In this document: positions 35,375 through 63,507 of the stretch, in pieces
How positions within the stretch are numbered: position 1 is the first letter of the stretch
Layout: the number at the start of each line of letters is the position of its first letter
Sequence record: LC494302.1
DNA length: 64,000 bases
Reading direction: 5' to 3' (one strand)
Translations under genes and position numbers: made by a program
Notes under the pieces: model-generated
The model's input: the letters and a program-made list of their open reading frames with translations, nothing else
What the model was told of the DNA's origin: nothing
Databases searched by the model: none

Positions 35375-35617
35375 ATGAAAGTACTGACAGAACTAGAAAT
35401 GTATCATAGATTTAATAAGTACTATCATTTACTTAAGCCTATACAGAGGATTAAATGTCCATTTGAAGAGAAACAGGTTTTAATCTATGAGCACAAGTTC
35501 TTTGTATCATTAGGTACAGATCAACAAGAGTACTATTTGACGTTGTACTTGATTACATTAATAGATTTAATTCACTATAAAACAAAACAAGCTAATAAAG
35601 AGAAATATGAAAACTAA
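35375..35617 (+). CDS. family B small protein
   Basis: LGTDQQE; ATG 35375. Confidence 0.85.
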   Translation: MKVLTELEMYHRFNKYYHLLKPIQRIKCPFEEKQVLIYEHKFFVSLGTDQQEYYLTLYLITLIDLIHYKTKQANKEKYEN

Positions 35618-35951
35618 TATACAACTCAAGGTATATAAATCATTTGAACATACATATATCAAAAGTAGTCTATGTAGAGATGTAATGGATTACAAGGGTA
35701 AGCCATTCACAATTACCTATGATTCTTATGTTAGTGATTTATATATATCATTTGTTAATTACGAAAATAAAATATACAAGCACGTTGATATTAAAGATTT
35801 AAGTACTTTATCTGAAGAGGAATACTTTCAGGAATCATTAGTATGGGATTTAGAGTTTCCTATGCCATTAGTACATAAGATGATAGTACTAATGAAAGAA
35901 TCTAAACAGGAGCCTAATGGTGATTATGAAGAACACACAGTTGAGTATTAA
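35607..35951 (+). CDS. family C protein (short type)
   Basis: LSTLSEEEYFQESLVWD. Confidence 0.85.
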   Translation: MKTNIQLKVYKSFEHTYIKSSLCRDVMDYKGKPFTITYDSYVSDLYISFVNYENKIYKHVDIKDLSTLSEEEYFQESLVWDLEFPMPLVHKMIVLMKESKQEPNGDYEEHTVEY

Positions 35952-36321
35952 AAGTACTGATAATATTAAGAGTTATACAAGCTCAAGTACTGTGACAATC
36001 GAAGTGAATTCTCTTAATGCTGGTAATACAGTAGATAAGTTCTTTATTGCTCAAGGGTACAGGAAAGATATTCATCAATATTGTTCAGTATATGGGGAGT
36101 ACAATAGTACTGAAGATATAATTTATTGGTCAACACATCAAGATTATCTAACTAAAATTGGCGTTCCAGATGTTAGTACTTTATCTGAAGAAGAATACTT
36201 TCAGTACAGCTTAGTACATGATTTACATATACCTTTAGGGTTAATCAAGGGTATGCAGGAAGAGGTTCATAAGCTTAAATCCATGAGTAAAGGTACTTTC
36301 ATTAGAACAGTGCAATACTAG
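35917..36321 (+). CDS. family C protein (short type)
   Basis: VSTLSEEEYFQYSLVHD. Confidence 0.85.
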   Translation: MVIMKNTQLSIKSTDNIKSYTSSSTVTIEVNSLNAGNTVDKFFIAQGYRKDIHQYCSVYGEYNSTEDIIYWSTHQDYLTKIGVPDVSTLSEEEYFQYSLVHDLHIPLGLIKGMQEEVHKLKSMSKGTFIRTVQY

Positions 36322-36322
36322 C

Positions 36323-36351
36323 TTGACAGTACTTTTCTTTAGTGCTATAGT
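36323..36351 (+). promoter_or_regulatory. sigma70-type promoter
   Basis: TTGACA-N17-TATAGT. Confidence 0.7.
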
Positions 36352-36380
36352 ACCTGTACGTTAATCATAGGGTAGAAATT

Positions 36381-36626
36381 ATGTTAAATTTTTTAAATTT
36401 TCTTATCGTCTTGTGTATTGTTCTTGGGATTGCACCATTTGTATTGTATTTCATGGATTCAGATGAAATGCAGAAGATGAATTGCACAAGGACAGGACAG
36501 AGTAGAGTAGAGACGATTCTTATGCCTGTTACGGTTATTGTTAACAACATGCCCATTACGAACATGGTCCCTACCCTAACGACAACGTACCAGTACTCTT
36601 GTACAGACGGAGAGAGGTGGAGATGA
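36381..36626 (+). CDS. small membrane-anchored protein
   Basis: N-terminal hydrophobic helix; CTRTG...YQYSC. Confidence 0.8.
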   Translation: MLNFLNFLIVLCIVLGIAPFVLYFMDSDEMQKMNCTRTGQSRVETILMPVTVIVNNMPITNMVPTLTTTYQYSCTDGERWR

Positions 36627-36943
36627 AATTTAATATAGCAAAAACATCGAGTATATGTATTTTTGGTTATGCAGAAGAGTTAGGTGATATTGACATTCTT
36701 TTGTACAAAAAGGATGGTGTTATGCATTTCAAGTACCAGGATGAAGAGGCAGACAATTATCTTTTACCTAATTTAGTACAAATGCAGGAAGAGGAATTAT
36801 TCCAGTACAGCTTAATATACGACATTGTTATTTGCACGATGCCAGTACTAATTAGTATTCAAAAAGTGATGCTCGATATGTATGATAAGCTAATACAAGG
36901 TACATCAGGGAGAATCATTGAAATCGATATACAAGACAATTAA
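36623..36943 (+). CDS. family C protein (short type)
   Basis: EEELFQYSLIYD; SD GAGGTG. Confidence 0.85.
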   Translation: MKFNIAKTSSICIFGYAEELGDIDILLYKKDGVMHFKYQDEEADNYLLPNLVQMQEEELFQYSLIYDIVICTMPVLISIQKVMLDMYDKLIQGTSGRIIEIDIQDN

Positions 36944-37136
36944 TCAAGAATGGAAGACCCAAAAGTACAGGGAATTCAACAGGAATTTTACAAAAGATGC
37001 ATTGAATTTAAAAACAACAGAGTTTGATATGTTTATTTTTCTTGGAACACGTTCACAAGAACAATTTGTTCATTATTATATAAATTCGTTGCGAACGGAG
37101 ATAGTATGCAAAACACAGGGTATTATAAAAAGGTAA
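36918..37136 (+). CDS. family B small protein (dispersed copy)
   Basis: LGTRSQE; TTG start. Confidence 0.7.
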   Translation: MKSIYKTINQEWKTQKYREFNRNFTKDALNLKTTEFDMFIFLGTRSQEQFVHYYINSLRTEIVCKTQGIIKR

Positions 37137-37372
37137 ACCAATATTTGTACGCTACAAAGTACAGGGATTTTTGTTTAAAGGGTGGTGATGAAGATTTTTC
37201 TTTGCGATTATCAGAATTTAATCTGTTATTTTATCTTGGTACAAAAGAACAAGAAGAAATGGCACAGAAATTTATCAAGCACCTTTTACAAAAAATTAAT
37301 ATGCAAATTTTGATGCTTAAGTTACAGAATGAGATAAATGAATATGAATCCAGAAATAGTTCAGGATCTTAA
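37106..37372 (+). CDS. family B small protein (dispersed copy)
   Basis: LGTKEQE; SD GGAG. Confidence 0.8.
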   Translation: MQNTGYYKKVNQYLYATKYRDFCLKGGDEDFSLRLSEFNLLFYLGTKEQEEMAQKFIKHLLQKINMQILMLKLQNEINEYESRNSSGS

Positions 37373-37879: not shown

Positions 37880-38082
37880 TGCAAAAGATTAATACGATAA
37901 CATTAAATGCATTACAGGATTCATTATTAGATAGTATTAAGATGTATTACAATATACATTTGAAGGGTGGTATTGATAATTACGATTATTATTTGAGTTT
38001 AATTACATTTGAGCACCTTTCAGTACAGGACAGGATTTTACATCCTACAAATCCTAGGTATCCATCGATAGGTAAATTATGA
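37879..38082 (+). CDS. small hypothetical protein
   Basis: TAATG overlap. Confidence 0.7.
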   Translation: MQKINTITLNALQDSLLDSIKMYYNIHLKGGIDNYDYYLSLITFEHLSVQDRILHPTNPRYPSIGKL

Positions 38083-38627
38083 ATGAGATAAAGTTATTAG
38101 CACACAAGATAAGTACAATAATGCTTATCCTCAATAACAACCATCCTATATCGCATATAGATGGAATCCTGAGTCAGAGGACAGGTGGTAGTTTATATTT
38201 GTCCATAAACGCGGATATCGCAAGGAAATACATTGATATTGATGTTGAAATCGAATATGATACAACGGGGATTGTTGATGTAGGTGCATTAATCAGTTCA
38301 AATCCAGTATCAGCATCCCCATTGACCAAAGATGTTAGTACAGGATTCGAAGGATATTTGTGGTACAATACCAATGATGATTATTTTATATATCAGCATT
38401 CCAATACAAATTATGATGAAGACAAATTTCAGTTCATAGACCCTTATGATGAAGCTGAAGTATTTCAAAAATCATTAATCACAAAACCGCATGAGATGAT
38501 GTATCTAATGTTATTCAGTACAATGCATTTGAATCCATTAATTAAAGGTTTAAAATTTTATATTCAATTAAATTTAGTCCATGTAGTTTATGATTTATTA
38601 ATGCAAGGATATAGTTATGAAGTATAA
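38079..38627 (+). CDS. family C protein
   Basis: DEAEVFQKSLIT. Confidence 0.85.
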   Translation: MNEIKLLAHKISTIMLILNNNHPISHIDGILSQRTGGSLYLSINADIARKYIDIDVEIEYDTTGIVDVGALISSNPVSASPLTKDVSTGFEGYLWYNTNDDYFIYQHSNTNYDEDKFQFIDPYDEAEVFQKSLITKPHEMMYLMLFSTMHLNPLIKGLKFYIQLNLVHVVYDLLMQGYSYEV

Positions 38628-38928
38628 AATGATGTATACCCCAGATATGATTTATGTTGAATTAGAAGATGATGACGATGGGTGGAATTTGATTTATTCA
38701 AGAAGTTCAGGTTGGTACATGGCACATTTAAATGATTCGATAGTTACAGATTATTTTGTAGATTTCAATACATTATCCGATGAAGAATTGTTCCAACAGC
38801 AATTAGTGATTGACACGGGTGGTTATGATGTCTTATTATTAAAAAAGATACAGAAAGCTGTTATTGATTTTAAGCCCATGATATGGCAAAGGAAATATTA
38901 TGACCTCGAAGTACCATACCAGCAATGA
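38617..38928 (+). CDS. family C protein (short type)
   Basis: LSDEELFQQQLVID. Confidence 0.85.
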   Translation: MKYKMMYTPDMIYVELEDDDDGWNLIYSRSSGWYMAHLNDSIVTDYFVDFNTLSDEELFQQQLVIDTGGYDVLLLKKIQKAVIDFKPMIWQRKYYDLEVPYQQ

Positions 38929-39466
38929 AATTCAGTACACCTACGCTAATGCAATCCTTATGGGACAAAAGTTAGCTTGTATTGTTGCAGCCTTATATAA
39001 TGCCCAGAAATATCACAAGCGTCATTTCCACAAATGTATTGGTATTATTCCATCGAAGTACAATACATATATTGCGTGCACGAGTCATTTTGATAAACGA
39101 TTCAATACACCAGATATACCAAATGCCCGTAGTGTTATTGGTCTTTTGGATTTCGCACCTGGTGCTGTTATTGGAAAGAATGATTTAGAGTACGCATGGT
39201 ATAATAAAAATGCCCCGTTAGTAATGGTAACATATGATAAAGAAACGAACAACGCAATAGAGTACAATACATATAAATCAGAGGAAGAATTTTTTCAAGG
39301 TTCAATGCTTGTACCAGTGCGTTTGTTATTTTATAATGTCATAATGAGTACAGTACACAATAGTCCATTACACAAGAATCACAAAATTAATTTCAATTTT
39401 TGTGCTTATGCGATTGATGGTGTGTATGAGTGTTTAATGGAGGTATTGAGTTATGAAGCTGAATAA
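38900..39466 (+). CDS. family C protein
   Basis: SEEEFFQGSMLV. Confidence 0.85.
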   Translation: MTSKYHTSNEIQYTYANAILMGQKLACIVAALYNAQKYHKRHFHKCIGIIPSKYNTYIACTSHFDKRFNTPDIPNARSVIGLLDFAPGAVIGKNDLEYAWYNKNAPLVMVTYDKETNNAIEYNTYKSEEEFFQGSMLVPVRLLFYNVIMSTVHNSPLHKNHKINFNFCAYAIDGVYECLMEVLSYEAE

Positions 39467-39794
39467 TACATTTGATATTAATAAGTTAAGAGAATGGTTT
39501 TATAGTATTGAAATTGAAGCCATCCCGTATCATAGATATGAACAATATAATTTAACCAGTATTGATATCAGTGAGTTGTACGCGTATTATCAAAGTGCAT
39601 TAGAGATGCATAAGTTATTTTTGAGTACAGATTTTGTTCTAAATTACAATTTTGAGGAATTTAAAAATTATAATTTAGTACAGAAATATGTAGTAGCAAA
39701 GTACATGTACCTTCAAGGAATTACAAGTATAGTGGAATTCAATACAGTCCTTGCTTTAGTTGAGGTAATTTTATGCAGTACATGTATGATTTAG
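39453..39794 (+). CDS. hypothetical protein
   Basis: SD GAGGT. Confidence 0.8.
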   Translation: MKLNNTFDINKLREWFYSIEIEAIPYHRYEQYNLTSIDISELYAYYQSALEMHKLFLSTDFVLNYNFEEFKNYNLVQKYVVAKYMYLQGITSIVEFNTVLALVEVILCSTCMI

Positions 39795-40279
39795 AGTTCA
39801 GCTTAGATGCTGCATTTAAATATGTTCACAAGATAGAAACAATATACAGTACATTATGTGCAATAAAATCAGTAACAGAAGAGCTTGATGTTGGTGAAAA
39901 ATATCAGGTATGGAATAATACATTTTTAAATAAAGAACGTTGCTCTACGGGGTTTAATATTTTAACATTTAATCCCAGCAATTGTTACCCAGAGAAGCAT
40001 GAACGTTATCCGAATGACGACATGTGGTTTGAGTACAAAGAAGATTGTGATATGTCGTTCATTGAAGTTCCTGATGATTTTAATGCACAAGATTTAACAG
40101 ACGAGTGGTGGTTCCAGCAGAATTTAGTCCACGATGATATTGATTTATTTTTTTATGTAGTATTTAAAATGCTTTATCACAACAATATAGTACAAGATAG
40201 TGTATTTTTTTCATGTCTATATATTGATGATTTGTACAATGAAATTCAAATCAACATGCCCAGAACGCCTGTATCGTAA
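39773..40279 (+). CDS. family C protein
   Basis: TDEWWFQQNLVHD. Confidence 0.85.
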   Translation: MQYMYDLEFSLDAAFKYVHKIETIYSTLCAIKSVTEELDVGEKYQVWNNTFLNKERCSTGFNILTFNPSNCYPEKHERYPNDDMWFEYKEDCDMSFIEVPDDFNAQDLTDEWWFQQNLVHDDIDLFFYVVFKMLYHNNIVQDSVFFSCLYIDDLYNEIQINMPRTPVS

Positions 40280-40294
40280 GATATGGGCTTTTTT
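40267..40294 (+). terminator. intrinsic terminator
   Basis: GCCTGTATC-GTAA-GATATGGGC then TTTTTT. Confidence 0.7.
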
Positions 40295-40304
40295 CGTTTT
40301 GGTA

Positions 40305-40333
40305 TTGACATAGAAGACCAAAGCTGTTATCAT
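40305..40333 (+). promoter_or_regulatory. sigma70-type promoter
   Basis: TTGACA-N17-TATCAT. Confidence 0.7.
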
Positions 40334-40361
40334 GTGTATTCATTTTAAAGGAGAATATATA

Positions 40362-40874
40362 GTGAGTTTCATAATCCCAAGTACATACGAAGATGCATCA
40401 AGTGCAGTTCATAAGATTCATTATATTTTTAATTTAATTATTAGATCTGCAAAAATTAAAATGTATGCACCTCTTGTGACAAATAATCGAAATGAAGAAA
40501 TTTTTATTAGCACAGACAAAATTATTTTTCCATATTTCAATGAAGATAGATTGTGGTTCATACATTTAGCTGCATTACAAAAATATAAGATGTCAATTCG
40601 TAATAATTTGGTTATACCGTTATATCATCCCGATATTGGAGAGGATGAGTATTTTCAGTACAGCACAGTACACCGCCATGAAGATATCTTTGCTGCTATG
40701 CTTATTGCTAAATTGAACACCGTTGATTTGGAGCAGTACAAATACAATAATAAATCATGTAAGATCATAATCCCTGCATTCATAGCTCTTTATGATTATG
40801 TGGTGCATAACAAAAAAGATGATACATATGCTTTCAATGAAGAGTATTTGGATTTTTTTAAGGATAACATATGA
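40362..40874 (+). CDS. family C protein
   Basis: GEDEYFQYSTVH; GTG start after AAGGAG. Confidence 0.8.
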   Translation: MSFIIPSTYEDASSAVHKIHYIFNLIIRSAKIKMYAPLVTNNRNEEIFISTDKIIFPYFNEDRLWFIHLAALQKYKMSIRNNLVIPLYHPDIGEDEYFQYSTVHRHEDIFAAMLIAKLNTVDLEQYKYNNKSCKIIIPAFIALYDYVVHNKKDDTYAFNEEYLDFFKDNI

Positions 40875-41410
40875 GCAGTACAACAGTATCAAAAGTACAG
40901 AAAGCAATGTCATTCAATGAAATTGGTACATTTAAAGATAAGATCATTGATTGCCTTGAATACATGATTTGTAGTAATATCGAAAGTATCGAGATATTTA
41001 ACAAGACAAATCGCTCTTACCATATGATGTACATTGCAAACAATAATGGTATCATTCCATTTATTTCGGATAGTACAATATGGTACGCATGTGATACGAA
41101 AAAAACCACAATAGGTTTACATTTATTTGAGACACATTATGATCTAATTATTCCTGAGCATTGTATGCAAGAAGAAGAATATTTTCAAATGCAATGTATA
41201 CATTCACCATTAGTGTTGTTTAGTTTATATATTATACCTTATATCACCAAATGTGTTCATGAGAATAAAGCTCCGTGGAATCATGAATTTGTATCGTTGA
41301 AGTTATTGTATAATGTATTAGTAGAATATTATGATTACAGGCACAATGGTACAATCAGTGATGTATGGGATTTTGAATCGCTAAGGGTGAAAACATACAC
41401 AGGTGAATGA
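40871..41410 (+). CDS. family C protein
   Basis: QEEEYFQMQCIH. Confidence 0.85.
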   Translation: MSSTTVSKVQKAMSFNEIGTFKDKIIDCLEYMICSNIESIEIFNKTNRSYHMMYIANNNGIIPFISDSTIWYACDTKKTTIGLHLFETHYDLIIPEHCMQEEEYFQMQCIHSPLVLFSLYIIPYITKCVHENKAPWNHEFVSLKLLYNVLVEYYDYRHNGTISDVWDFESLRVKTYTGE

Positions 41411-42026
41411 TATGACCAGAATTAAAATGTATGATTTGATGCAGTACAGTAAAATTGCCATTCCAGTGCTTAATAAAGTGCTGGATGCATTCATTGCCAA
41501 ATACCCTGAGAATTCAGTGTTATGTATTCCATTTAGTGTTCCAGATAAAGATGATATATTCCAAGTGAATGTCAGTACACGTGGTATTACATTACAGCAG
41601 AAATACATGGATACGGAATATTATGGAATAAAGTTGGATTCAGTACAGGGTTCAAAATCAGCCTATGATTTTTTTGTTCCTAATAATATAGAGTCATGGG
41701 AAACAAACATTTCAAAGAAAGATGAAAATGATGTTCCTATTAGTGGTGTGTTCAACAATAAAGTTTTTTATTATTACGAAACCGACAAATTCCCTGAAGA
41801 GTTATATTACAATTCAGAAATGAATGAAGATGTAGATGCATTCATGTTTCAATTATCTTTAGTACATGATATCATTGATGTTAAAGAGTTAAGAGCAGAA
41901 ATCAATTTAGCTAAAGAGTTATCGGACATGCTGCCACCGTTTAGTATGCTTTTTTGTGAAGGTGGTTATTTTTCAAAAGAAGTGTTTGAACATTTCGTAG
42001 ATGTTGTAAAAGGGTTGGATATATAG
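41403..42026 (+). CDS. family C protein
   Basis: DAFMFQLSLVHD. Confidence 0.85.
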   Translation: MNDMTRIKMYDLMQYSKIAIPVLNKVLDAFIAKYPENSVLCIPFSVPDKDDIFQVNVSTRGITLQQKYMDTEYYGIKLDSVQGSKSAYDFFVPNNIESWETNISKKDENDVPISGVFNNKVFYYYETDKFPEELYYNSEMNEDVDAFMFQLSLVHDIIDVKELRAEINLAKELSDMLPPFSMLFCEGGYFSKEVFEHFVDVVKGLDI

Positions 42027-42230: not shown

Positions 42231-42749
42231 ATGCATCAACACAAGCATCATTCATATGATTTTGCAATTAACATTATGAAGTTCATTCGAGCGTTGGAGG
42301 ATGGGAAGCTTAGTCATAAGTACAGAAAAGAGGGTAACAATTGGTTCAGAAATGATGATGATGAGTTCAGAAGTCATAAGATTGTTTACAGCAATAATTA
42401 CAGTGCCAATTACCTACAAGATGTAGTGATGTGTTTTGAATACGTGTTGCAGTTCAGGGGTTCAATCCAGGATGAGTTGATGGAGCACATGTACATCAGA
42501 TACCTTCCAATGCTCAAAGATGAAAATGTATTATTAAATTCAATATACCAACGAGTTCGTGAAATTGAGTGCAGGGATATATTAGATACAGAAGAATCGT
42601 ATTTCCAGCAATCCCTGATTTATGCACCTGATTTATTACAGGTACATAATTTGTTTAATACATTACGTCAAAACATCAGTACAGACATATTTTTGTCATT
42701 ATCGGATTATGATACATTTGTCAAAGATTTAGAGGAAATAGGTTTATGA
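42231..42749 (+). CDS. family C protein
   Basis: TEESYFQQSLIY. Confidence 0.85.
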   Translation: MHQHKHHSYDFAINIMKFIRALEDGKLSHKYRKEGNNWFRNDDDEFRSHKIVYSNNYSANYLQDVVMCFEYVLQFRGSIQDELMEHMYIRYLPMLKDENVLLNSIYQRVREIECRDILDTEESYFQQSLIYAPDLLQVHNLFNTLRQNISTDIFLSLSDYDTFVKDLEEIGL

Positions 42750-43090
42750 GTATATTTTCGGTTTATATAGTAAACGTCAGTAAAGATGGTAGTTTAATTG
42801 AATTTGATGTAGTTGATAACAATGATAATTCATATGGTATTAAGGTACAGGACAATGATGTACAGTTCAGTACAAGGACAAATTTTGAGAATCCAGTCCA
42901 AGTTCCGAATTTCATAGAAGATGAAGCTGCACGATTCCAATACGAAACGGCATATGACAATGTACATATGCATATTATTATGCAAACGAGTTTAGTTCAA
43001 TTAGTTCCTTTGTTCAGACAAAATATATATGTACATGAAGTGTCGATTAATGGCATTCAAAGTTCCGTTTTGTTCGGTACAAATATGTAA
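42746..43090 (+). CDS. family C protein (short type)
   Basis: DEAARFQYETAYD. Confidence 0.8.
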   Translation: MSIFSVYIVNVSKDGSLIEFDVVDNNDNSYGIKVQDNDVQFSTRTNFENPVQVPNFIEDEAARFQYETAYDNVHMHIIMQTSLVQLVPLFRQNIYVHEVSINGIQSSVLFGTNM

Positions 43091-43100
43091 GGAAAGTACA

Positions 43101-43652
43101 ATGAGTTCAATGAGTTTATTAGATACATTAGAAAAAGACAGAAGTGCAATTAAGCGTTTAAAAGAGCAAGTACAAAAGATTGTATACAACGTTGATAAGT
43201 TTGAAGTCCCAGGAAGATTTGGTGATATTTCCCATACGGAGATCAAATCCCTTAAGTCAGATTTGTTGATTAAAAATAAAAATGGGTTGATTTTAGTTTT
43301 GAGTTCAGATATGATGGGGGCAACACATAGTTATAATGCAGTATCGGTGCGTTCAGAGTGTGAAGGTATATATCTATCACAGGGTTTCAATAGCGAGACA
43401 CAGGTTTGTTTTTGTGATGCAGTACATGACCCTATGAAGTTCACGAGAAGTGAAGCCCAAGCGTTATTAGAGCTATCAGACGAGAGTTTGTTTCAGTACA
43501 GTACAATGTATGACAATGATAAGCTTCGTTGTATGTACGCTGTAAAGCATTATACACATGAGTTCTCTGGATTTGCATACCTTTTAGTTAGAACCAATAC
43601 CAGATATATTGATATGTTAGAAGATTACATCGATAAAGTTGTTAATGTATGA
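43101..43652 (+). CDS. family C protein
   Basis: SDESLFQYSTMYD; ATG 43101 after AAGGA. Confidence 0.85.
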   Translation: MSSMSLLDTLEKDRSAIKRLKEQVQKIVYNVDKFEVPGRFGDISHTEIKSLKSDLLIKNKNGLILVLSSDMMGATHSYNAVSVRSECEGIYLSQGFNSETQVCFCDAVHDPMKFTRSEAQALLELSDESLFQYSTMYDNDKLRCMYAVKHYTHEFSGFAYLLVRTNTRYIDMLEDYIDKVVNV

Positions 43653-46024: not shown

Positions 46025-46025
46025 A

Positions 46026-55094: not shown

Positions 55095-55654
55095 ATATCA
55101 ATGATTACCAATTTCATAGGCTTGAATTTCGTCATTGTGTTGCATTTGCAAAAACATTGATGTGCATCATTGACACTCTTTCATCCAAACAATTTCGTAA
55201 GGATAATGATTTATTTCTGAAAAAAGGTCGTGTAACATCATCCGATATCAGTGTTGAACTATTTGTTGATATCAGTGTTGATACCGGAGACAGTACAAGG
55301 GTTGGTTGTATAGGTCATATTGGTACACATTGCTTCACATGGAATCCAAATACAAGTCAAGTACGAATTGATTATAGAAATTCACGTTGGGTTGATCTTA
55401 GTACTGAATCCGATTTAGAATCAGCTATGTTCCAGCTAAGTTTAATTCACAATCCTAATGAACTTCTTTACATTATTACTTTCAGTTATCTGTTACAAAA
55501 CTACGATAATCCATCAGGGTTTTTCATAGAATCGGATATAGAAGAAATTATGGAAGAGTTTCCTAGTTTAAAGGATATTCTGGTAGAAAAAGATTTCTAT
55601 GAAGACTTCAGAGATTTATACGACATGCACTTGGAGTTATTTAAGAATGGATAA
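55091..55654 (+). CDS. family C protein
   Basis: LESAMFQLSLIHN. Confidence 0.85.
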   Translation: MNINDYQFHRLEFRHCVAFAKTLMCIIDTLSSKQFRKDNDLFLKKGRVTSSDISVELFVDISVDTGDSTRVGCIGHIGTHCFTWNPNTSQVRIDYRNSRWVDLSTESDLESAMFQLSLIHNPNELLYIITFSYLLQNYDNPSGFFIESDIEEIMEEFPSLKDILVEKDFYEDFRDLYDMHLELFKNG

Positions 55655-56165
55655 AGATGATATTCTAATTAGACTAATTAAGAGTTTAATAAAGTTCTCA
55701 AATAATGATGTCGATACATACAAAGTAGGGGATATTGAATTCAAATCATTTGGTATGTACGGTGAGGACAAAACATATTATGCGTCAATGAAATTTCAAG
55801 ATTTTCACGAGATGTTAATATCGTTATCATATGAAGATGTTGATCCAAGATGGAGTTCCAGTATTTCACTATCGAGAATGGTAATTCGTAGTAAGCATCG
55901 TTACATTTCGTCAAAGAATACTCCTAACTTGATTAATATTGTGTTGAATGAAAATACCAATCCTATATCTAAACTTGATATCGTACCGTTAACCGATGAA
56001 GTACTTTTTCAATTGAGTACCATTTGTGATGAAGATGTGATATCATGTATGAAAATTTATGAGACGGTTGGGAGTGATATTCACATGAACTATTACCTAA
56101 CGATAGATGGAACATACCTCAGAGATGAAGCTCTAGCGTACATTGACAGTGTTTTACCAAAATAA
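55647..56165 (+). CDS. family C protein
   Basis: TDEVLFQLSTICD; ATG 55647 after GGAG. Confidence 0.85.
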   Translation: MDKDDILIRLIKSLIKFSNNDVDTYKVGDIEFKSFGMYGEDKTYYASMKFQDFHEMLISLSYEDVDPRWSSSISLSRMVIRSKHRYISSKNTPNLINIVLNENTNPISKLDIVPLTDEVLFQLSTICDEDVISCMKIYETVGSDIHMNYYLTIDGTYLRDEALAYIDSVLPK

Positions 56166-56185
56166 AGACCCTTATGGGTCTTTTT
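56164..56185 (+). terminator. intrinsic terminator
   Basis: AAAGACCC-TTAT-GGGTCTTTTT. Confidence 0.8.
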
Positions 56186-56196
56186 GTGTTTATGTC

Positions 56197-56225
56197 TTTA
56201 CAGTAGCATTCAGATGTGTTATAAT
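56197..56225 (+). promoter_or_regulatory. sigma70-type promoter
   Basis: TTTACA-N17-TATAAT. Confidence 0.7.
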
Positions 56226-56252: not shown

Positions 56253-56819
56253 ATGAGTACTGAATTAATTAAAGAAGTTACCTTACTTCTGAAGCATTGT
56301 TTTAAGTTCATTCCTGATACTGGTTCACGCCAGTACATTAAAGTTAATGAGAAATATAACATCAATATCCTTGTATCTGAAACTGCGAGCAGTTATGCTA
56401 ACATTGAGTTGGATTCTGAAGAAAAATATACAGTATTACAAATCATAGCAGATGTACAACGTAAACAAGATTACCGTTCTTCATTTTACAACGATTATCT
56501 GTGTGTTTGCTCAAACTTCAGTGAGAATAAAATTGTGTATAAGAATTTATACACACATGAAGTGATTGATACATATAATTATAAAATTTCATCTGATGAA
56601 TACAATGTGCTAATGTTCAACGCAAACCTTTTGTATGATGCCAGTACTGTACGCTGTTTAGAGTTAGCATATAAAATTCCAAAGATCATGGAAAGAAAAG
56701 ATTTGATTCACTTTAAAACTATTTTAAAATACAGTACAAAAGAATTAGAGGATTTAGTACAGGCTCTTAAGAATTTCATTAATGAACATGTACCTGTTAA
56801 ATTCGAGGATGCACAATGA
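56253..56819 (+). CDS. family C-like protein (degenerate motif)
   Basis: YNVLMFNANLLYD; SD AGGAG. Confidence 0.85.
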   Translation: MSTELIKEVTLLLKHCFKFIPDTGSRQYIKVNEKYNINILVSETASSYANIELDSEEKYTVLQIIADVQRKQDYRSSFYNDYLCVCSNFSENKIVYKNLYTHEVIDTYNYKISSDEYNVLMFNANLLYDASTVRCLELAYKIPKIMERKDLIHFKTILKYSTKELEDLVQALKNFINEHVPVKFEDAQ

Positions 56820-57400
56820 ACCATATCAGAACTAAAATTTTGAGACTCATGCATGACATTGCAGAACTTTCAGAGATTCATGACATTACAGAAATTGTTG
56901 AATTTGATGATTATCGACTGAAAATTGAAAACAAATCCAAACATCGTTTTGGATCAGTTCAGTTGGATGTATATAAAACTTATGAATTTTCTAAAAAAAT
57001 TAAAAGTTCATGGGATACGATTACTATGTACATTCGCACATCCAGAAATCGTGAACGTATTGGTTCTATTTCTTCTAATATGGTATTTGCGAATGCATTA
57101 CATGAAAAAATGAATAAAATTGTAGAATCTGATTTCAGTGAAGATGATGGTTTTATTGGGTTGGATGTTCCACCAGAATTAGACCAAAGTGAAGATATTC
57201 GAGATGCATTCATTTTCCAGAAATCATTGTTGGACAATTACAAAGAATTCGAGTACTTAATGCTTTGTTACGATACTGCAAAAGTTCTTGATTGTGGTGA
57301 ACTAGTTATGTACAATGATTTTATCAATTACAAGACTGATGTTCTGAATACACTACTTCAAAATATAGAATCGGTTAAGGAAAAATATGAACGCTTATAG
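56816..57400 (+). CDS. family C protein
   Basis: RDAFIFQKSLLD. Confidence 0.85.
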   Translation: MNHIRTKILRLMHDIAELSEIHDITEIVEFDDYRLKIENKSKHRFGSVQLDVYKTYEFSKKIKSSWDTITMYIRTSRNRERIGSISSNMVFANALHEKMNKIVESDFSEDDGFIGLDVPPELDQSEDIRDAFIFQKSLLDNYKEFEYLMLCYDTAKVLDCGELVMYNDFINYKTDVLNTLLQNIESVKEKYERL

Positions 57401-57965
57401 TTATATGACAGAACGCCATCAGTTATTATATGATATCAGTACAAAAATGTTATCAATTGTTAGTAGTGCAAAAGAAATTGAAAAACAATACCTCATCCGT
57501 GATGTAGCAATTTCATCTAAATGTTGGTCCAATGAATATTACGATCACGGTATTCTTACTATTTCTGGGGCTAGAAATATTTGTATTGTAAAAAATAAAA
57601 ATAAAAGTAATGAAGAGTGTGAGATTATAACCGATATACAAATTAAGGATGATGGAAGTTTTTCACACCACCCATTCCATATTAGTACTATTGGTGTTTT
57701 ATATAATATTAAAGTACTATTCGGTGATGAAGAGTATGTGTTAAAATCTATCAATCCAGAATCAAGTACAGTTGAAGAAGAACTGTTCCAGATGAGCACT
57801 GTTATACCTGAAGAGGTTCTTAGTACTGTTATTTTTTGTAGTTTAATTTATCATGAATACAAAAAGTACCAGTTCGATTTCCACATGTTAGGAACATACA
57901 TCTTCAATAATTTGAATGTAGATCGTTTAACAGCATTAAATGCAGCAATGGATAAGGTGCTATAA
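57387..57965 (+). CDS. family C protein
   Basis: VEEELFQMSTVIP. Confidence 0.85.
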   Translation: MNAYSYMTERHQLLYDISTKMLSIVSSAKEIEKQYLIRDVAISSKCWSNEYYDHGILTISGARNICIVKNKNKSNEECEIITDIQIKDDGSFSHHPFHISTIGVLYNIKVLFGDEEYVLKSINPESSTVEEELFQMSTVIPEEVLSTVIFCSLIYHEYKKYQFDFHMLGTYIFNNLNVDRLTALNAAMDKVL

Positions 57966-58393
57966 TGACAAGAGATGATTGTTTGTACATATGGGATATA
58001 ATTGAAACTACACTTTCAAATCCAGAAAATTATAAAACAAAAAAAAGACAACGACACAAAATATGGATAGATTTGTTCGTTGAGGGCATACACGCAGTGA
58101 CTATTTGGGATTCACCGAGGGCATCATCATCTACTCTGTTGGACAATGAATGCATTGATTGCATTAATTCCACTTTTCATCTCTACGGTACTACAATTTT
58201 TGGTACATTTCTGGATATTGAAAGTAAAGATGATATTGATTCACTTGCGTTACAATACCAAGTACTATATAATACTAAATTAATTTACGATTTAGTACTA
58301 GCTTCTTATGTGTATAAATTAATGATGAAATATAATCATATTTCTGTTTCAGTTTATACTAAGGATATTCTTTCATTAAGAGACAAAACATGA
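57965..58393 (+). CDS. family C-like protein (degenerate motif)
   Basis: IDSLALQYQVLYN. Confidence 0.8.
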   Translation: MTRDDCLYIWDIIETTLSNPENYKTKKRQRHKIWIDLFVEGIHAVTIWDSPRASSSTLLDNECIDCINSTFHLYGTTIFGTFLDIESKDDIDSLALQYQVLYNTKLIYDLVLASYVYKLMMKYNHISVSVYTKDILSLRDKT

Positions 58394-58899
58394 GTTTATT
58401 AAATGCACGCGAATTGGTTGAGATGTATGAGATTTTGTCTTCATATAAAAATTCTCCAAAAGATGTAATTCTAAACAAAAAGTTCCATGTCAGTGTTGAA
58501 CATATAACAAATATAGATATGATTTCTTTGGTGGAAAGTAATAAGTCAGGTCTGGAGCGTGATATCATGCGTTTGATTTATATTCCTAAACCATCATATA
58601 CTAATGATAGTACTATTAGCAATGAGACATTCATGTATAGTCCTGGTACGGATTCTACTATAGTATCGCTGTCCAATAAATCAATGGATACTTTCCAATT
58701 CATCTATACCAGTACTGATAACATTGAAGAAATTGAATTTCAAAACAATACATTAAGTCCATGTAGTAGTGTTATAACCTTTATGTCATATCTATGGTCA
58801 ACTAAAACAAGTGCTGTTGTATATAGTTCAAATTATACACAAGATAGTATTGTTGAATCATATAAAGTTCTAAAGGAATACTATGAAAATAACAAATGA
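58390..58899 (+). CDS. family C protein
   Basis: IEEIEFQNNTLS. Confidence 0.8.
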   Translation: MSLLNARELVEMYEILSSYKNSPKDVILNKKFHVSVEHITNIDMISLVESNKSGLERDIMRLIYIPKPSYTNDSTISNETFMYSPGTDSTIVSLSNKSMDTFQFIYTSTDNIEEIEFQNNTLSPCSSVITFMSYLWSTKTSAVVYSSNYTQDSIVESYKVLKEYYENNK

Positions 58900-59464
58900 T
58901 TTTATTAAAAGTGTAGTACACCCTATGCTTAGTATTATGAAAAAAATACAGAATCTACCGGAAGATAACGATTACAAGTTTAATCGTTTTGATTCAGATG
59001 TGTTTTGTATTGAAATTGAAATTAATAACAATCGTAATTTACATTTAAAATTCAAAGAATCTTCGAGTCCGTACTACAACTTTGATATGAATTTTAAAAT
59101 AGATACTGACATTGAAGAAAACGTAATATCAAATCATACTAGCAAAAATGGTTTTATGCATAGAACTACTATGTACAATAATAAAAATAGTATTATATCT
59201 AAATGGAATCAACAATTCACTAAAATTTGTGAAATTGAATATAATGATTTTGGTAAAGAACATTACTTTCAGTTAAGTACAATTCATGAACTTCCACCAT
59301 ATGATTATGTTAAAACATGGTTTGATATTCATAATATAATTGATGATGCAATCAAACTTCCATTTGGTGTGTCAATATCATATACTGCTCCTAAAACATT
59401 TGTTTTTACTGAAGATATGATTATGAAAAAGATATGGGCAATCATCCCACTTATGATGGATTAA
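58883..59464 (+). CDS. family C protein
   Basis: GKEHYFQLSTIHE. Confidence 0.85.
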   Translation: MKITNDFIKSVVHPMLSIMKKIQNLPEDNDYKFNRFDSDVFCIEIEINNNRNLHLKFKESSSPYYNFDMNFKIDTDIEENVISNHTSKNGFMHRTTMYNNKNSIISKWNQQFTKICEIEYNDFGKEHYFQLSTIHELPPYDYVKTWFDIHNIIDDAIKLPFGVSISYTAPKTFVFTEDMIMKKIWAIIPLMMD

Positions 59465-59470
59465 ATTTGT

Positions 59471-59507
59471 ACCAGGGGTTGACTCTGGTTTTTTTGTATG
59501 ATACATT
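59471..59507 (+). terminator. terminator overlapping a possible promoter
   Basis: ACCAGGG-GTTGA-CTCTGGT then T run; contains TTGACT-N17-TACATT. Confidence 0.6.
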
Positions 59508-59525
59508 GTTCTCAAGGAGAATTTT

Positions 59526-60077
59526 ATGAACTACAATCATGATCTTTTTACATTATGTGCATCCAAATGTGTTGAAGGATGGGCAGATAAAATCAATATC
59601 ATAATTCATCGATATCTCGTCTTTAGTTCCCGTGCACGAAGTGAGGGGGCTATGGATTTCAAATATACACTATCTATTGATGGTGTAACTATCCATGCAG
59701 ACGAAGAACGTCTGAACATTAATTTGTATGATTCCTGTGTATTTGCTATTCACCAAAAGATGGGGAAAGGATGGGGTTGTAATAACATTAACTCCAAAGC
59801 TATCTTTTGGGTTGGTCACCATCAGACAGTACTTGATCCTTCAATCAAATCTAATCTTTTATCCGATAATATGGTTTATGATTTATTGTACTCCGAAGAA
59901 CAACATTTTCAGTTAAGTACATTGCATGTTCTGGCACAGTACGAGGATTGTTACAAAACATTAGAACTATGCCATTCCCTTGAACTTAAAGATAAATTAA
60001 TACAAGTTTACCCTTCATTCTTTCATGAAGAAGTCCAAAGTACACTAGATCATATTTTATATGGATACGATAAATGA
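59526..60077 (+). CDS. family C protein
   Basis: SEEQHFQLSTLHV; SD AAGGAG. Confidence 0.85.
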   Translation: MNYNHDLFTLCASKCVEGWADKINIIIHRYLVFSSRARSEGAMDFKYTLSIDGVTIHADEERLNINLYDSCVFAIHQKMGKGWGCNNINSKAIFWVGHHQTVLDPSIKSNLLSDNMVYDLLYSEEQHFQLSTLHVLAQYEDCYKTLELCHSLELKDKLIQVYPSFFHEEVQSTLDHILYGYDK

Positions 60078-60676
60078 GAAAAAGTTATCAAGAAGCTATT
60101 GACTTAATTCGTGAAGTTATCAAGGTGGCTCCTGCTGCTATTGAGTTCAAGAAGTCCATATACAAGAAGTATGGGTCAATGTCGAGTATGTGCTTTCAAA
60201 AGAAACGTAGAGCATTCACTACCCAGTACTGGAATGATTCTATCATCCTGAGCAATGAGACTCAGCGTATTTTAACACTAGAATCTGAACCTAATGAGTA
60301 CGGGGAAGGAAACATTTGTGTACCTGATTATGATGAAATTAACTTCAACTGCGGTGATTTTGAAACAACATTATTACTTCATGAGGGTTATCCAGAAGGT
60401 GATGTATTAGCTGAATACAATCCAAAAACTAAAATTCTCAAAAGAGGAATTCAGTTCACTATTAATAACAAAGATGATGTTGAAGCAGCACTGATGCAAC
60501 TGAGTACAAGTGAACCTATCACTATTAGTGTAGAAGAGTTATGGGGAATTATTTCAGTACTCAATGAGTGCTATAAAGTAAAATCATTGCGTAATCACAC
60601 CCTTATATTGCATACTAATATGGCAAATATAAAATGTAAGCACATTCAAGAAATGGTGGTTCCAGATGGACTTTAA
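60074..60676 (+). CDS. family C protein
   Basis: VEAALMQLSTSE. Confidence 0.8.
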   Translation: MRKSYQEAIDLIREVIKVAPAAIEFKKSIYKKYGSMSSMCFQKKRRAFTTQYWNDSIILSNETQRILTLESEPNEYGEGNICVPDYDEINFNCGDFETTLLLHEGYPEGDVLAEYNPKTKILKRGIQFTINNKDDVEAALMQLSTSEPITISVEELWGIISVLNECYKVKSLRNHTLILHTNMANIKCKHIQEMVVPDGL

Positions 60677-61250
60677 AGAAATTGAAAGTAAATTAAAGTA
60701 CTTCAAAGATATCAAACTTCTTTGGGAAAAGTATAAAATTGATTACAATTTCAGTGATGATGAGACAATAAAATACATTGAGATTAATATCAAAATCAAG
60801 TTCAAGAATAATAATTATGGTGAAGTAAGCTTAAATCATGCTGGTATATCACTCAAGGACTATGATGGTTCAACACTCGCATATTTCGACTTCACACCAG
60901 AACCAGGTGAAACACTACTTAGTGAGATAAATTCCTATGACATGGAAGTGTTCGGCGGGAATCCGTTACTGTTCCGACTTTCTGAAGAGTGGAGTGAAGA
61001 ATACTACACTTACAAAGATGGTGTAGTACTTGACATTCATGGAGAAGTTGTGAATGACTTGGAAGAACGTTTGTTCCAAGAATTGTGTGTTTCAAATACT
61101 TCATATGCATACAATCATATCCTTGACATGTTTGATTTATATAGTAAAATAGATGCTGAAATGAATGCACATGGTATTCATTACCTTACAATTAACGACT
61201 ATGCTCAACTCGAAACCGCTGTGAAAGCATTGACTAAAGTACTGAAATAG
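60666..61250 (+). CDS. family C protein
   Basis: LEERLFQELCVS. Confidence 0.8.
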   Translation: MDFKEIESKLKYFKDIKLLWEKYKIDYNFSDDETIKYIEINIKIKFKNNNYGEVSLNHAGISLKDYDGSTLAYFDFTPEPGETLLSEINSYDMEVFGGNPLLFRLSEEWSEEYYTYKDGVVLDIHGEVVNDLEERLFQELCVSNTSYAYNHILDMFDLYSKIDAEMNAHGIHYLTINDYAQLETAVKALTKVLK

Positions 61251-61259
61251 GAATGAAAT

Positions 61260-61673
61260 ATGAAACTGTATCATGCGAGTACTGTAAAAATTGATAACTT
61301 TTATATCCCGTATGGTGGCCTTCATATGGGAGGTAAACACAGTGCTTTAGAAGCTGCCTTACGCAAGCTGAGAAGCCCACTAAACGTTGTTGACGCATGT
61401 ACAGTATACTTGCATACCTTAGAAGTTGATGTTGATAACGTGCTTCTGTGTGAAGATTTAGGCAGTGATGATGAGTGGCGTTCACTTATTGAGAATTGCA
61501 CGGCTCAAGGTTATGATGCTGTTCAGTACAAAAATGATTACGAGCCAGACAATGTTCCTAGCTTTATGATTTGGGATACATCTAAAATTCGTATTATTGA
61601 AGTTGATGCGATGCATATGGATGAAGCTGAAATGATCATCGAAGATTTCCTTGATGAATATGAAGGTGTATAA
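61260..61673 (+). CDS. ADP-ribosyltransferase-like fold protein
   Basis: KLYHAS...GLHMG...SALEAA...GYDAVQYKNDYE...SFMIWDTSKI; layout of small phage/polyvalent ART-like domains (by eye). Confidence 0.55.
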   Translation: MKLYHASTVKIDNFYIPYGGLHMGGKHSALEAALRKLRSPLNVVDACTVYLHTLEVDVDNVLLCEDLGSDDEWRSLIENCTAQGYDAVQYKNDYEPDNVPSFMIWDTSKIRIIEVDAMHMDEAEMIIEDFLDEYEGV

Positions 61674-62191
61674 TGATTGAACCTATGACAGTACTAGCAC
61701 GTACTAAATTATTATTGAAGATTGCTGAAATATTCACTGTTCTTATGTACAATAATCAAGACATAACTGACTTAGGTATTAAGCAACCGTGGCAAATTAC
61801 AAAGTTCACGGCGTTCCACCGATTGTCATATAATGGTGAAACTGTTCTTGATTTTAATCCAAAAGCCACGTTCGTGAATTACGCTGCATTATATGGATGT
61901 AATGGTGGATTAACAAATGACTTCACTGAAATAAAAGTACAATCAGAATCATTAGAATTTAATGACTTAATATATCCAGAATTTAAGTTAACAGAAGAAA
62001 CACTATTTCAGTACTCACTAATTATAAAAGATGTATATGATCTTGAGTACTACAAAGAGTTAGTAGATATTTTTAAGAATACTCGACTTTCAAAAGATAT
62101 TGTGATATTCTGGTATGTTGAGTATGTTACAGAGGAATTGCTAGAAGAATTTCTTCTAAATATGACAGCTATAAAGGAGAAGTTATGTTAG
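61673..62191 (+). CDS. family C protein
   Basis: TEETLFQYSLII. Confidence 0.85.
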   Translation: MIEPMTVLARTKLLLKIAEIFTVLMYNNQDITDLGIKQPWQITKFTAFHRLSYNGETVLDFNPKATFVNYAALYGCNGGLTNDFTEIKVQSESLEFNDLIYPEFKLTEETLFQYSLIIKDVYDLEYYKELVDIFKNTRLSKDIVIFWYVEYVTEELLEEFLLNMTAIKEKLC

Positions 62192-62658
62192 ATATTTTAG
62201 GAAACATCGACACTGCAAATTATTTTATTCAAGATGCATTGTTTAATACAGTACAACAAGGTTTAGAAGTTCACCACAATGTTTATCAGGGTGATGGATA
62301 TTTTGTTGATATTATCGAGACACGTAAAAATACATTTAATGTTAACATTACGACGCTTGGAAGACAGAACATTGCACGAATTTTAGTAAGTAAAGATGAA
62401 ATAGTACTGAGATACAGTGCTAAGTTTATGTTGACTTATAAGAAAAAAACTGATATGTTCAGTACTAATTTATTTGATGAGCCATTTGACCTTGAAGATA
62501 TTGAAGCTACTTTCTTTACTCAAAGTACTATGGTAAAATACACTGATGTTCAATTTTCTGCTGATGTAATGTCAGAAACATTACAAATGATCAAGGTATT
62601 ATTTTATGCATTTGAGCAATTTAGAGAAGAAAGAAACAAGGTTAACAACCACAGATGA
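62185..62658 (+). CDS. family C protein
   Basis: IEATFFTQSTMV. Confidence 0.8.
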   Translation: MLDILGNIDTANYFIQDALFNTVQQGLEVHHNVYQGDGYFVDIIETRKNTFNVNITTLGRQNIARILVSKDEIVLRYSAKFMLTYKKKTDMFSTNLFDEPFDLEDIEATFFTQSTMVKYTDVQFSADVMSETLQMIKVLFYAFEQFREERNKVNNHR

Positions 62659-63019
62659 ACTAATAGAGGCGATCACTAAGGAGTCAAAATACCATAAAGG
62701 GATTCGTCTATACTTTATAGATACTGGTTCGATGGAAGGTACATACATTTATGGTTCACAATCGTTGTCTTATGATGCAATGCCAAATAAACATGTTAAA
62801 ATCTTTTTAGGTTCAAGTAATAAAACTTTCTTGACAATTAATGATAAAAACGTTATTATGAATTCGTTGGGTCATGATAAGGTGGAAATTGATCTAAACA
62901 CGCTGGAGGATATTGATTTTTTTCAATACGAGTGTTTAGGTGTTGACTTACATGGCATTAGTAGCGATATGATAAAATCATTAATCAAATATTTCGAAGG
63001 TGTTCATAAATGTATCTAA
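62606..63019 (+). CDS. family C protein (start uncertain)
   Basis: LEDIDFFQYECL. Confidence 0.75.
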   Translation: MHLSNLEKKETRLTTTDELIEAITKESKYHKGIRLYFIDTGSMEGTYIYGSQSLSYDAMPNKHVKIFLGSSNKTFLTINDKNVIMNSLGHDKVEIDLNTLEDIDFFQYECLGVDLHGISSDMIKSLIKYFEGVHKCI

Positions 63020-63507
63020 CTAAATCAATGAAAAATTCATTTGATAAAATTAAGAGTTGTCTTGATGGAGAAAATATTACAAGTGTTACACAAACTGCTG
63101 ACCAAATTCAAAGCAGTTCAAGTGATTGCACTGTTATTTTTGGTTTACATAGTCTGCGTTTATCAATAGTAAATAATATTGACAACACTGCTATTGTAAT
63201 CACACCATGCAATATTCAAAATGAGAATGGTGTATATCTTCATCACATGGGAACAGTATTTCACATTTTCAATTCAAACGAAAACATTGTTAAGGAATAC
63301 AATACTCTTAATATTGATTCAGGTGAATTATTTCAAATGAGTACTTTGTACTCATGTAATTTTACAGATACTTCATGTATTTTGCCATTTTTCTTGGAAA
63401 TTATTAAGAAAATGGAAAATTTAAAACGTGAATACAATAAAGAAATGGTTCCTGAAGCTATATTAAATATTACTAATGCTATAGAGAAGTATAATGCAGT
63501 GACTTAA
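63010..63507 (+). CDS. family C protein
   Basis: DSGELFQMSTLYS. Confidence 0.85.
   Translation: MYLTKSMKNSFDKIKSCLDGENITSVTQTADQIQSSSSDCTVIFGLHSLRLSIVNNIDNTAIVITPCNIQNENGVYLHHMGTVFHIFNSNENIVKEYNTLNIDSGELFQMSTLYSCNFTDTSCILPFFLEIIKKMENLKREYNKEMVPEAILNITNAIEKYNAVT

Follow-up and report, generated by a model that had tools for sequence, protein, structure and literature searches.

The window analysed here is a stretch of 64,000 nucleotides identical with bases 124001–188000 of Escherichia phage SP27 (LC494302.1), a jumbo myovirus of 347 kb belonging to species PBECO4 of the genus Asteriusvirus. Positions refer to the window unless another genome is named. Our subject is the segment 35607–63507, 28 kb that form a tandem array of approximately 49 diverged paralogues of one small protein family. 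Open reading frames (ORFs) run exclusively on the plus strand in this segment and are close-packed, with frequent 4-base start/stop overlaps and only six gaps of more than 50 bases. All 65 coding sequences of the segment are hypothetical in the SP27 record. The array takes up about 8% of the 347-kb genome with a single family.

The array and its members

A sequence-only reading of the window had proposed that a short motif is common to the ORFs of the array, and counting bears this out. In its strict form, F-Q-x-S-[LT]-[VILM], the motif occurs in 31 of the 66 plus-strand ORFs of at least 50 amino acids (aa) in 35607–63507, versus none of 105 elsewhere in the window; none was found in the three minus-strand frames, and 1000 shuffles of the same proteins averaged 0.05 occurrences and never exceeded 2. 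A looser pattern with a preceding acidic residue is present in 37 of the 66 ORFs and again in none of the 105. Searches of the window for tRNAs and Rfam families returned zero matches, and DNA-level tandem repeats are confined to an adjoining array of small ORFs and two short intragenic repeats, which rules out RNA genes or DNA repeats as the source of the motif pattern. The motif phenylalanine lies at 0.50–0.75 of the protein length, in the C-terminal half as the same reading had placed it. Its distance from the C-terminus is near-constant (40–74 residues) and that from the N-terminus is variable (62–154 residues), and therefore the size variation is N-terminal to the motif.

Single-linkage grouping with BLAST joined 26 ORFs of the array. 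An iterated hidden Markov model (HMM) raised this to 37 members at E<1e-3, and a profile broadened by 145 database representatives to 40. In nine more ORFs a degenerate motif stands at the corresponding position; the 12 best sub-threshold matches of the widened profile include eight of these ORFs, and all 12 lie inside the array. Profile–profile comparison of these nine leftover ORFs aligned the motif columns only, as each query profile contained just one or two homologues, and for this reason the nine, which rest on the degenerate motif only, are kept as probable members. The total comes close to the 51 counted earlier by eye. The end of the array also stays where it had been put, at 63507, as the next seven genes have no profile match. 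ORF starts used here are the first start codon past a stop and hence approximate; the SP27 record places several gene starts 24–147 bases downstream of them. The members are listed below, all on the plus strand, with E values from the iterated HMM unless marked as widened profile.

35607–63507, plus strand: whole tandem array; 40 members with profile support, 9 probable members and a few small ORFs unrelated to the family
35607–35951, plus: member, short form, 114 aa, E 5e-16
35917–36321, plus: member, 134 aa, E 1.4e-18
36599–36943, plus: member, short form, 114 aa, E 3.2e-13; record start 36623
38079–38627, plus: member, 182 aa, E 3.9e-24
38617–38928, plus: member, short form, 103 aa, E 3.2e-11
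38900–39466, plus: member, 188 aa, E 3.2e-23
39773–40279, plus: member, 168 aa, E 6.1e-25
40332–40874, plus: member, 180 aa, E 1.2e-13
40871–41410, plus: member, 179 aa, E 6.9e-20
41403–42026, plus: probable member, 207 aa, motif present; sub-threshold in widened profile, E 0.0037; hhalign 52% on motif columns
42231–42749, plus: member, 172 aa, E 1.3e-19
42746–43090, plus: member by widened profile, 114 aa, E 1.8e-4
43029–43652, plus: member, 207 aa, E 5.6e-21; record start 43101
44326–44811, plus: member, 161 aa as first-start ORF, E 7.7e-18; record start 44473
44808–45167, plus: member, short form, 119 aa, E 8.4e-17
45164–45523, plus: member, short form, 119 aa, E 5.6e-15
45533–46024, plus: member, 163 aa, E 1.7e-32
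46026–46496, plus: member, 156 aa, E 3e-25
46493–46936, plus: member, 147 aa, E 3e-29
46936–47427, plus: member, modelled long form, 163 aa, E 8.6e-34; AlphaFold2 pLDDT 89.8
47402–47845, plus: member, 147 aa, E 2.1e-31
47842–48156, plus: member, short form, 104 aa, E 4.4e-13
48156–48629, plus: member, 157 aa, E 8.1e-26
48595–49041, plus: member, 148 aa, E 5.9e-26
49038–49574, plus: member by widened profile, 178 aa, E 2.3e-5, end to end
49929–50489, plus: member, 186 aa, E 3.5e-21
50480–51082, plus: possible member, 200 aa, very degenerate motif
51088–51450, plus: member, modelled short form, 120 aa, E 6.2e-15; AlphaFold2 pLDDT 78.9
51440–51775, plus: member, short form, 111 aa, E 1.7e-15
51735–52319, plus: member, 194 aa, E 1.5e-25; record start 51783
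52379–52855, plus: member, 158 aa, E 6e-26
52852–53337, plus: member, 161 aa, E 6.6e-26
53327–53689, plus: member, short form, 120 aa, E 6.3e-18
53673–54086, plus: member, 137 aa, E 4.1e-18
54074–54568, plus: member, 164 aa, E 4.7e-20
55091–55654, plus: member, 187 aa, E 1e-25
55599–56165, plus: member, 188 aa, E 2e-19; record start 55647
56253–56819, plus: possible member, 188 aa, degenerate motif; widened profile E 0.014
56816–57400, plus: probable member, 194 aa, motif present
57387–57965, plus: member, 192 aa, E 4e-19
57965–58393, plus: probable member, 142 aa, degenerate motif, E 0.02
58390–58899, plus: probable member, 169 aa, degenerate motif; widened profile E 0.0035
58883–59464, plus: member, 193 aa, E 1.7e-16
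59526–60077, plus: member by widened profile, 183 aa, E 5.6e-5
60666–61250, plus: probable member, 194 aa, degenerate motif; hhalign on motif columns
61673–62191, plus: member, 172 aa, E 8.1e-14
62185–62658, plus: possible member, 157 aa, degenerate motif
62606–63019, plus: probable member, 137 aa, degenerate motif; widened profile E 0.012
63010–63507, plus: last member, 165 aa, E 2.7e-13

Fold, motif and selection

All members are predicted to form one compact alpha/beta domain composed of an antiparallel sheet, a capped motif helix, a long amphipathic helix and a last strand. HMM matches span approximately the first to the last residue in most members. An alignment of 240 sequences was made from window members, members of three other loci and database representatives. 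Its hydrophobic positions follow a helix or strand periodicity all the way from residue 3 to 151 of the 46936–47427 product. This product, a long form, was modelled with AlphaFold2 from an alignment of the 37 window paralogues only and yielded a single confident domain (predicted local distance difference test, pLDDT, 89.8; predicted template modelling score, pTM, 0.84). The model contains a helix at residues 3–21, seven strands between 28 and 97, short helices at 99–103 and 109–115, and a C-terminal part consisting of a helix (121–135), a strand (141–144) and a final helix (145–152). The model of the 120 aa short form from 51088–51450 (pLDDT 78.9, pTM 0.73) presents the core elements in the same order, with five strands, a motif helix at 64–73, a helix at 82–97 and a last strand at 111–118. 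Both models were built on alignments of about 40 diverged sequences. The long forms have additional N-terminal and C-terminal helices and more sheet, and the size differences fall in the sheet part, N-terminal to the motif. A 21-base repeat in 2.2 copies (45677–45723), inside the member at 45533–46024, adds a repeated peptide to this variable sheet part.

Several elements picked out by eye in the sequence-only reading, namely the amphipathic helix after the motif, the N-terminal helix of the long members and the FYLD-like strand, appear both in the AlphaFold2 model and in the column statistics. Its view of the central regions as unalignable, unrelated target-binding modules did not survive, since the profile matches end to end, the core hydrophobics are conserved throughout and the model is a single domain. 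The related idea of different folds sharing one peg is excluded by the end-to-end profile alignment and the one predicted alpha/beta domain. That reading had itself raised the contrary prospect of a motif that is the buried core of one ordinary fold; the part of it that concerns a single end-to-end fold is what HMM coverage and the models indicate.

The composition of the motif columns in the 240 aligned sequences, numbered on the product of 46936–47427, is as follows.

Column 108: T or S, 65%
Column 109: E, 81%
Column 110: E, 75%
Column 112: hydrophobic, 91%
Column 113: F, 100%
Column 114: Q, 100%
Column 116: S, 88%
Column 117: L or T, 93%
Column 118: hydrophobic, 98%

The motif block is the most confident part of the long-form model (pLDDT 97–98), and the short motif helix begins exactly at residue 109. 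A hydroxyl residue followed by acidic residues at the start of a helix is a standard capping and dipole arrangement, stabilising and common. Four motif positions are hydrophobic columns of the core type; together with the helix-capping start they mean that much of the motif is accounted for by structure. In the model the motif looks like a capped short helix that anchors the phenylalanine in the core, plus an invariant glutamine. Gln 114, together with Ser 116 and with Glu 110, which lies a turn apart from the Gln on one face of the helix, could be part of a buried polar network or of a small exposed patch.

The paralogues are strongly diverged, with a mean column identity of 13%. Recent-looking duplications are restricted to two local groups, 44326–45523 and 45533–47845 (33–57% identity), and for the remaining members the best paralogue and the best match from another genus score alike. 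Between phages the picture is one of conservation. Reciprocal best matches in phAPEC6, a phage of the same species as SP27, were obtained for 39 of 40 members, with a median identity of 96.8% and a ratio of nonsynonymous to synonymous substitution rates (dN/dS) of 0.29; orthologues in fEgEco12 number 38 of 40, at 84% identity and a dN/dS of 0.26. Pooled by region, dN/dS is 0.31–0.35 before the motif, 0.13–0.18 around it and 0.25–0.29 after it. Positive selection was considered and rejected, as no region exceeds 0.35; two short genes have a dN/dS near 1, resting on very few substitutions. Each paralogue thus appears, from these comparisons, to be retained as a one-to-one orthologue under purifying selection, and the family is retained across several phage genera. 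The description of the proteins as hypervariable therefore holds between paralogues and fails between orthologues, and the rapid diversification suggested earlier is contradicted, as far as differences between phages go, by the one-to-one orthology and the dN/dS of 0.26–0.29. The synonymous divergence (dS) between SP27 and fEgEco12 swings from 0.01 to 2.7 among neighbouring genes (35607–63507 versus 27270–56262), and the array is therefore a mosaic of close and distant alleles. This pattern points to exchange of diverged alleles rather than hypermutation. The corrected picture is of one old, stable domain family and not of unrelated hypervariable proteins sharing a peg, and it shifts the questions to whether the motif is buried, when the genes are expressed and what each copy targets.

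Relatives and described families

The sequence-only reading had recognised no described family, and systematic searches agree with it: Pfam, NCBIfam, PADLOC and the PDB gave no recurring match, and the PHROGs groups have no assigned function. Scans of ten proteins and then of all 37 members against Pfam, NCBIfam and PADLOC returned isolated weak matches, with no family matched by more than one member. In PHROGs the members are scattered over many groups (9317, 12674, 13866, 15629, 19795, 22855, 30243 and others), each of unknown function. Sequence-profile searches of the PDB reached E values of 0.95 and 2.7 at best. Foldseek comparison of the models with the PDB gave a best E value of 3.5 with the long form and of 0.38 with the short one, at template modelling (TM) scores below 0.35; weak rows to proteasome subunits and MHC-like platforms, at TM 0.2–0.33, are not evidence of kinship. 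Against predicted viral structures, the significant or near-significant rows were uncharacterised proteins only, from 121Q, RaK2, GAP32, Serratia phage BF, Yersinia phage fHe-Yen9-03 and SP27 itself.

Three known types of protein were compared with the family. F-box and SOCS-box proteins had zero Pfam matches among the scanned members, and the motif lies inside a single domain rather than forming a separate module. SUKH (Smi1/Knr4) immunity proteins are small alpha/beta proteins of about 150 aa that occur as tandem diverged paralogues in poly-immunity loci and act by binding. The array proteins resemble them in size, alpha/beta make-up and tandem paralogy and differ in having no Pfam or solved-structure match; no SUKH match occurred among the Pfam scans or the Foldseek rows against the PDB, and this candidate was set aside. 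Comparison with DNA mimics of the Ocr, ArdA and Arn type drew on the acidity of the products (median isoelectric point, pI, 4.75; median net charge −9; pI 7.8 for the other ORFs of the window), yet several members are neutral or basic, and Foldseek against the PDB found no fold match of either model to solved DNA mimics. A hydrophobic 19-residue window is present in only two of 50 products, one of the two being an over-long ORF call. The array proteins are accordingly predicted to be soluble and mostly acidic.

A profile search of 1.84 billion representatives retrieved 145 proteins at E<0.001, with the loose motif in 138 of them. Twenty of these clusters were looked up, and the 11 that have a named member, always a 'hypothetical protein', come from Asteriusvirus, an E. 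coli assembly with a contig of about 350 kb or the Klebsiella phages RaK2, K64-1 and KP13-7. Two metagenomic contigs repeat the array layout; one has at least 21 members and the other at least 14. With one and the same profile the copy number is 40 in SP27, 42 in phAPEC6, 43 in fEgEco12 and at least 20 in Klebsiella phage fENko-Kae01. To judge from these matches the family appears limited so far to RaK2-like jumbo phages of enterobacteria.

To our knowledge, few phages show a large expansion of a single family. The literature searches turned up no account of the present family, although a single sentence mentions an array: Hua et al. 2017 (mBio, PMC5646251) interpret a tandem array of 121Q as duplication that has enlarged the genome. 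This phage, a near relative of SP27 within Asteriusvirus, has orthologues that are 93% identical and carries orthologues of the array. The reading as tandem duplication is the same as ours. Their account differs in being limited to that sentence, which gives neither coordinates nor a motif, fold, function or analysis of selection, and the sentence may refer to the neighbouring family of 65–96 aa proteins (29848–35617), whose copies are more alike, or to both arrays. The RaK2 paper puts paralogues at about 10% of RaK2 proteins. Motif, fold, selection and setting are described in neither of the two papers. In Bacillus phage G, about 35 zinc-ribbon genes form a lineage-specific expansion (Iyer et al. 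2021, PMC7824862). This case is similar in that one small domain is greatly expanded in a jumbo phage, and differs in fold and phage group; that review does not describe the SP27 family.

Genomic setting and proposed function

In fEgEco12, whose ends have been determined experimentally, the direct terminal repeat is 20,993 bp long (1–20993), and the counterpart of window positions 10000–20000 lies inside it. An array of 65–96 aa ORFs then begins at 21091, followed by the motif family from 27270 to 56262. In fENko-Kae01, whose ends have also been determined (repeat 19,736 bp), the family begins 24 bases past the repeat. A position at the genome end beside the terminal repeat, as in early host-takeover blocks, is therefore found in both phages.

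Within the array the larger gaps contain the following predicted signals.

36323–36351, plus strand: sigma70-type promoter, 11/12, with TG; 59-base intergenic gap, kept in relatives
40267–40333, plus strand: terminator-like hairpin with T-run, then sigma70-type promoter (11/12, TG); 52-base gap
52316–52345, plus strand: sigma70-type promoter, 12/12 with TG; 59-base gap
56164–56225, plus strand: terminator-like hairpin, then sigma70-type promoter (11/12, TG); 87-base gap
59471–59489, plus strand: terminator-like hairpin with T-run; 61-base gap

A predicted sigma70-type promoter matching at least 11 of 12 positions, always with an extended −10 TG, is present in four of the six gaps longer than 50 bases, and a hairpin with a T-run in three of the six. 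Ten plus-strand matches of this grade occur in about 36 kb, from which roughly 0.1 would be expected in the 409 gap bases. The gaps are 86–100% conserved at syntenic places in phAPEC6 and fEgEco12. The phages of this group encode a sigma factor but no RNA polymerase. We infer that promoters and terminators in the gaps would divide the array into about seven operons; literature searches found no transcriptome of any RaK2-like phage.

The reading we favour, at about even confidence, is that the array encodes a battery of early cytoplasmic binders that share one scaffold and are retained each for a separate host or defence target, with the motif as keystone of the fold. Host RNA polymerase would transcribe the array early in infection. 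Each copy is individually conserved and therefore would have its own job; using the sheet side, which is variable, each would inactivate or divert a different component of the host or of its defences. The motif would be first of all a structural keystone, an N-capped and dipole-stabilised short helix whose invariant phenylalanine and neighbouring hydrophobics enter the core while Gln, Ser and Glu form a polar network, and it might additionally serve as a shared contact site. A host-takeover or anti-defence role is plausible, and an early host-directed role fits because the array stands at the terminal repeat, has sigma70-type promoters and encodes products that are acidic and soluble.

Early host-takeover blocks beside or within terminal repeats are known from the T5 pre-early genes, the SPO1 host-takeover module and the Kayvirus terminal-repeat genes. 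Like the array, these blocks stand at a genome end by a long direct repeat, use host-type promoters and encode many small non-virion proteins of unknown function; they consist mostly of unrelated genes, whereas the SP27 array is a single family of about 49 members on 8% of the genome, for which early timing is inferred. The terminal multigene families of large eukaryotic DNA viruses, for which host-range or immune-evasion roles are documented, are likewise tandem diverged paralogues near the ends, with copies kept and a lineage-dependent number, and have no sequence or fold relation to the array. By analogy, the array family, itself a member of no described protein family, may work like both.

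A number of points weigh against this interpretation. Its early timing is drawn from promoters and position only, and the total of promoter-like matches in the region is not above that in shuffles, with only the best ones sitting in gaps. Acidity is a weak hint that says little on function. The proteins have no known binding partner and no fold relative hinting at binding. The keystone role of the motif is read from the helix start and the column classes rather than from computed residue burial, and the glutamine is invariant, with serine and the Glu-Glu pair near-invariant, while the core positions vary freely among hydrophobics, which may hint at more than a folding role.

These polar residues also speak for the adaptor model of the sequence-only reading. 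Here the motif helix would be exposed and dock on a common host or phage hub, for example a protease, and the variable remainder would bring differing targets. We consider this unlikely. Gln at 100%, Ser at 88% and Glu at 81% and 75% stand out in 240 sequences that are otherwise about 13–17% identical; a helical wheel places the second Glu and the Gln on one face, a turn from each other, beside variable solvent-facing positions; and a ClpP-like protease is encoded downstream of the array in relatives. The motif is neither a tail nor a linker, however, but the most confidently modelled part of a single domain, with four positions of hydrophobic core type and a T/S-E-E start that is a common stabilising arrangement, and no partner is known. 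The same residues might instead make a small-molecule or metal site, the family being sponges or weak enzymes, given that the sole strongly conserved polar residues cluster within eight positions. This is very doubtful: the invariant residues are Phe and Gln only, none typical of catalysis, no enzyme or ligand-binding family or fold was matched in Pfam or by Foldseek against the PDB, and some 49 diverged copies are hard to square with one ligand. A combined picture of about 50 early binders with a fold unseen in solved structures, an exposed Glu/Gln/Ser helix docking on a single hub and sheets that capture differing targets, as a phage counterpart of the eukaryotic-virus terminal multigene families, is in our estimate a rather long shot.

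The constant distance of the conserved module from the C-terminus (40–74 residues) and the many copies that are predicted to be co-transcribed and are translationally coupled would also suit co-assembly, with the C-terminal module as a common subunit interface in a mixed multi-subunit intracellular structure. That is improbable in view of a crude fENko-Kae01 preparation retaining complexes above 300 kDa, in which one of about 27 array genes was detected, and of copy numbers that vary by genus (40–43 versus 20 or more). Filling of large capsids has been proposed in general terms for the growth of jumbo phage genomes, and the array could on this account be filler, tandem duplicates without individual functions. 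The duplication reading of the 121Q array (PMC5646251) and the two clusters of recent duplicates at 44326–45523 and 45533–47845 are in its favour; purifying selection on nearly every copy, one-to-one orthologues that are intact across species despite dS of up to 2.7, and retention across several genera make it a disfavoured and highly improbable explanation. Lastly, since 121Q and phAPEC6 heads contain an inner body, one could imagine that the proteins travel in the head and are ejected, the motif serving as a packaging or processing signal. The array of phAPEC6 encodes gp404c–gp466c, none of which is among the 62 proteins of its virion proteome, and the virion proteins of RaK2 map to two other gene clusters; the shared loading signal entertained in the sequence-only reading is thus unlikely, and with the motif in a folded helix rather than a terminal or flexible segment, packaging and ejection is largely refuted and retains almost no credence.

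The outline of the motif recalls the sites of Gln-specific viral cysteine proteases. A protease recognition site was judged unlikely, since the motif lies in a confidently folded helix in both models. We know of no Gln-specific viral-type cysteine protease in these phages; the proteases annotated in relatives' records are a prohead protease and a ClpP-like subunit, the genomes not having been searched for others.

The family of putative early binders accounts for about 8% of the genome without an assigned function or fold relatives, yet nearly every copy is intact under purifying selection across genera. Should its members be early and host-directed, the array would amount to a ready-made library, on one small scaffold, of about 50 natural proteins that inhibit or modulate E. 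coli proteins or defence systems.

Other features were observed at the locus and its surroundings. Directly upstream of the array lies a second tandem family (29848–35617, plus 36918–37136, 37106–37372 and 49748–49939) of 28 ORFs of 65–96 aa; its products are basic (median pI 8.7), belong to phrog_4148, which has no assigned function, and show recent DNA-level duplications at 32593–33081 and 33422–33857. Further upstream, 10000–29600 holds small, mostly monocistronic genes with their own spacers and is the counterpart of fEgEco12's 21-kb direct terminal repeat; the SP27 record has a circular layout and no repeat. An element at 28830–28902 combines a sigma70-type promoter with a 5' leader hairpin and a ribosome-binding site; as DNA it is 85–89% conserved in phages outside the genus, namely Salmonella phages Munch and 7t3, Klebsiella phage fENko-Kae01 and two metagenomic contigs, although the DNA on either side cannot be aligned. 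In fENko-Kae01 the element is found just inside the repeat end.

Inside the phAPEC6 array, the 125-aa ORF gp447c (21809–22186 of its locus) is labelled 'amidohydrolase 3', a length which we take to be too short for an amidohydrolase. Beyond the window, SP27 encodes two 282-aa proteins with an F-Q stretch (188187–189035 and 190211–191059) and no family profile match. Two further small paralogue families, of 9 and 6 ORFs of about 60–80 aa, occur at 4566–8548 and 5027–6171. The minus strand of 1–4046 carries four RCC1-like 'DNA condensation' genes, and proteins so annotated are virion components in phAPEC6.

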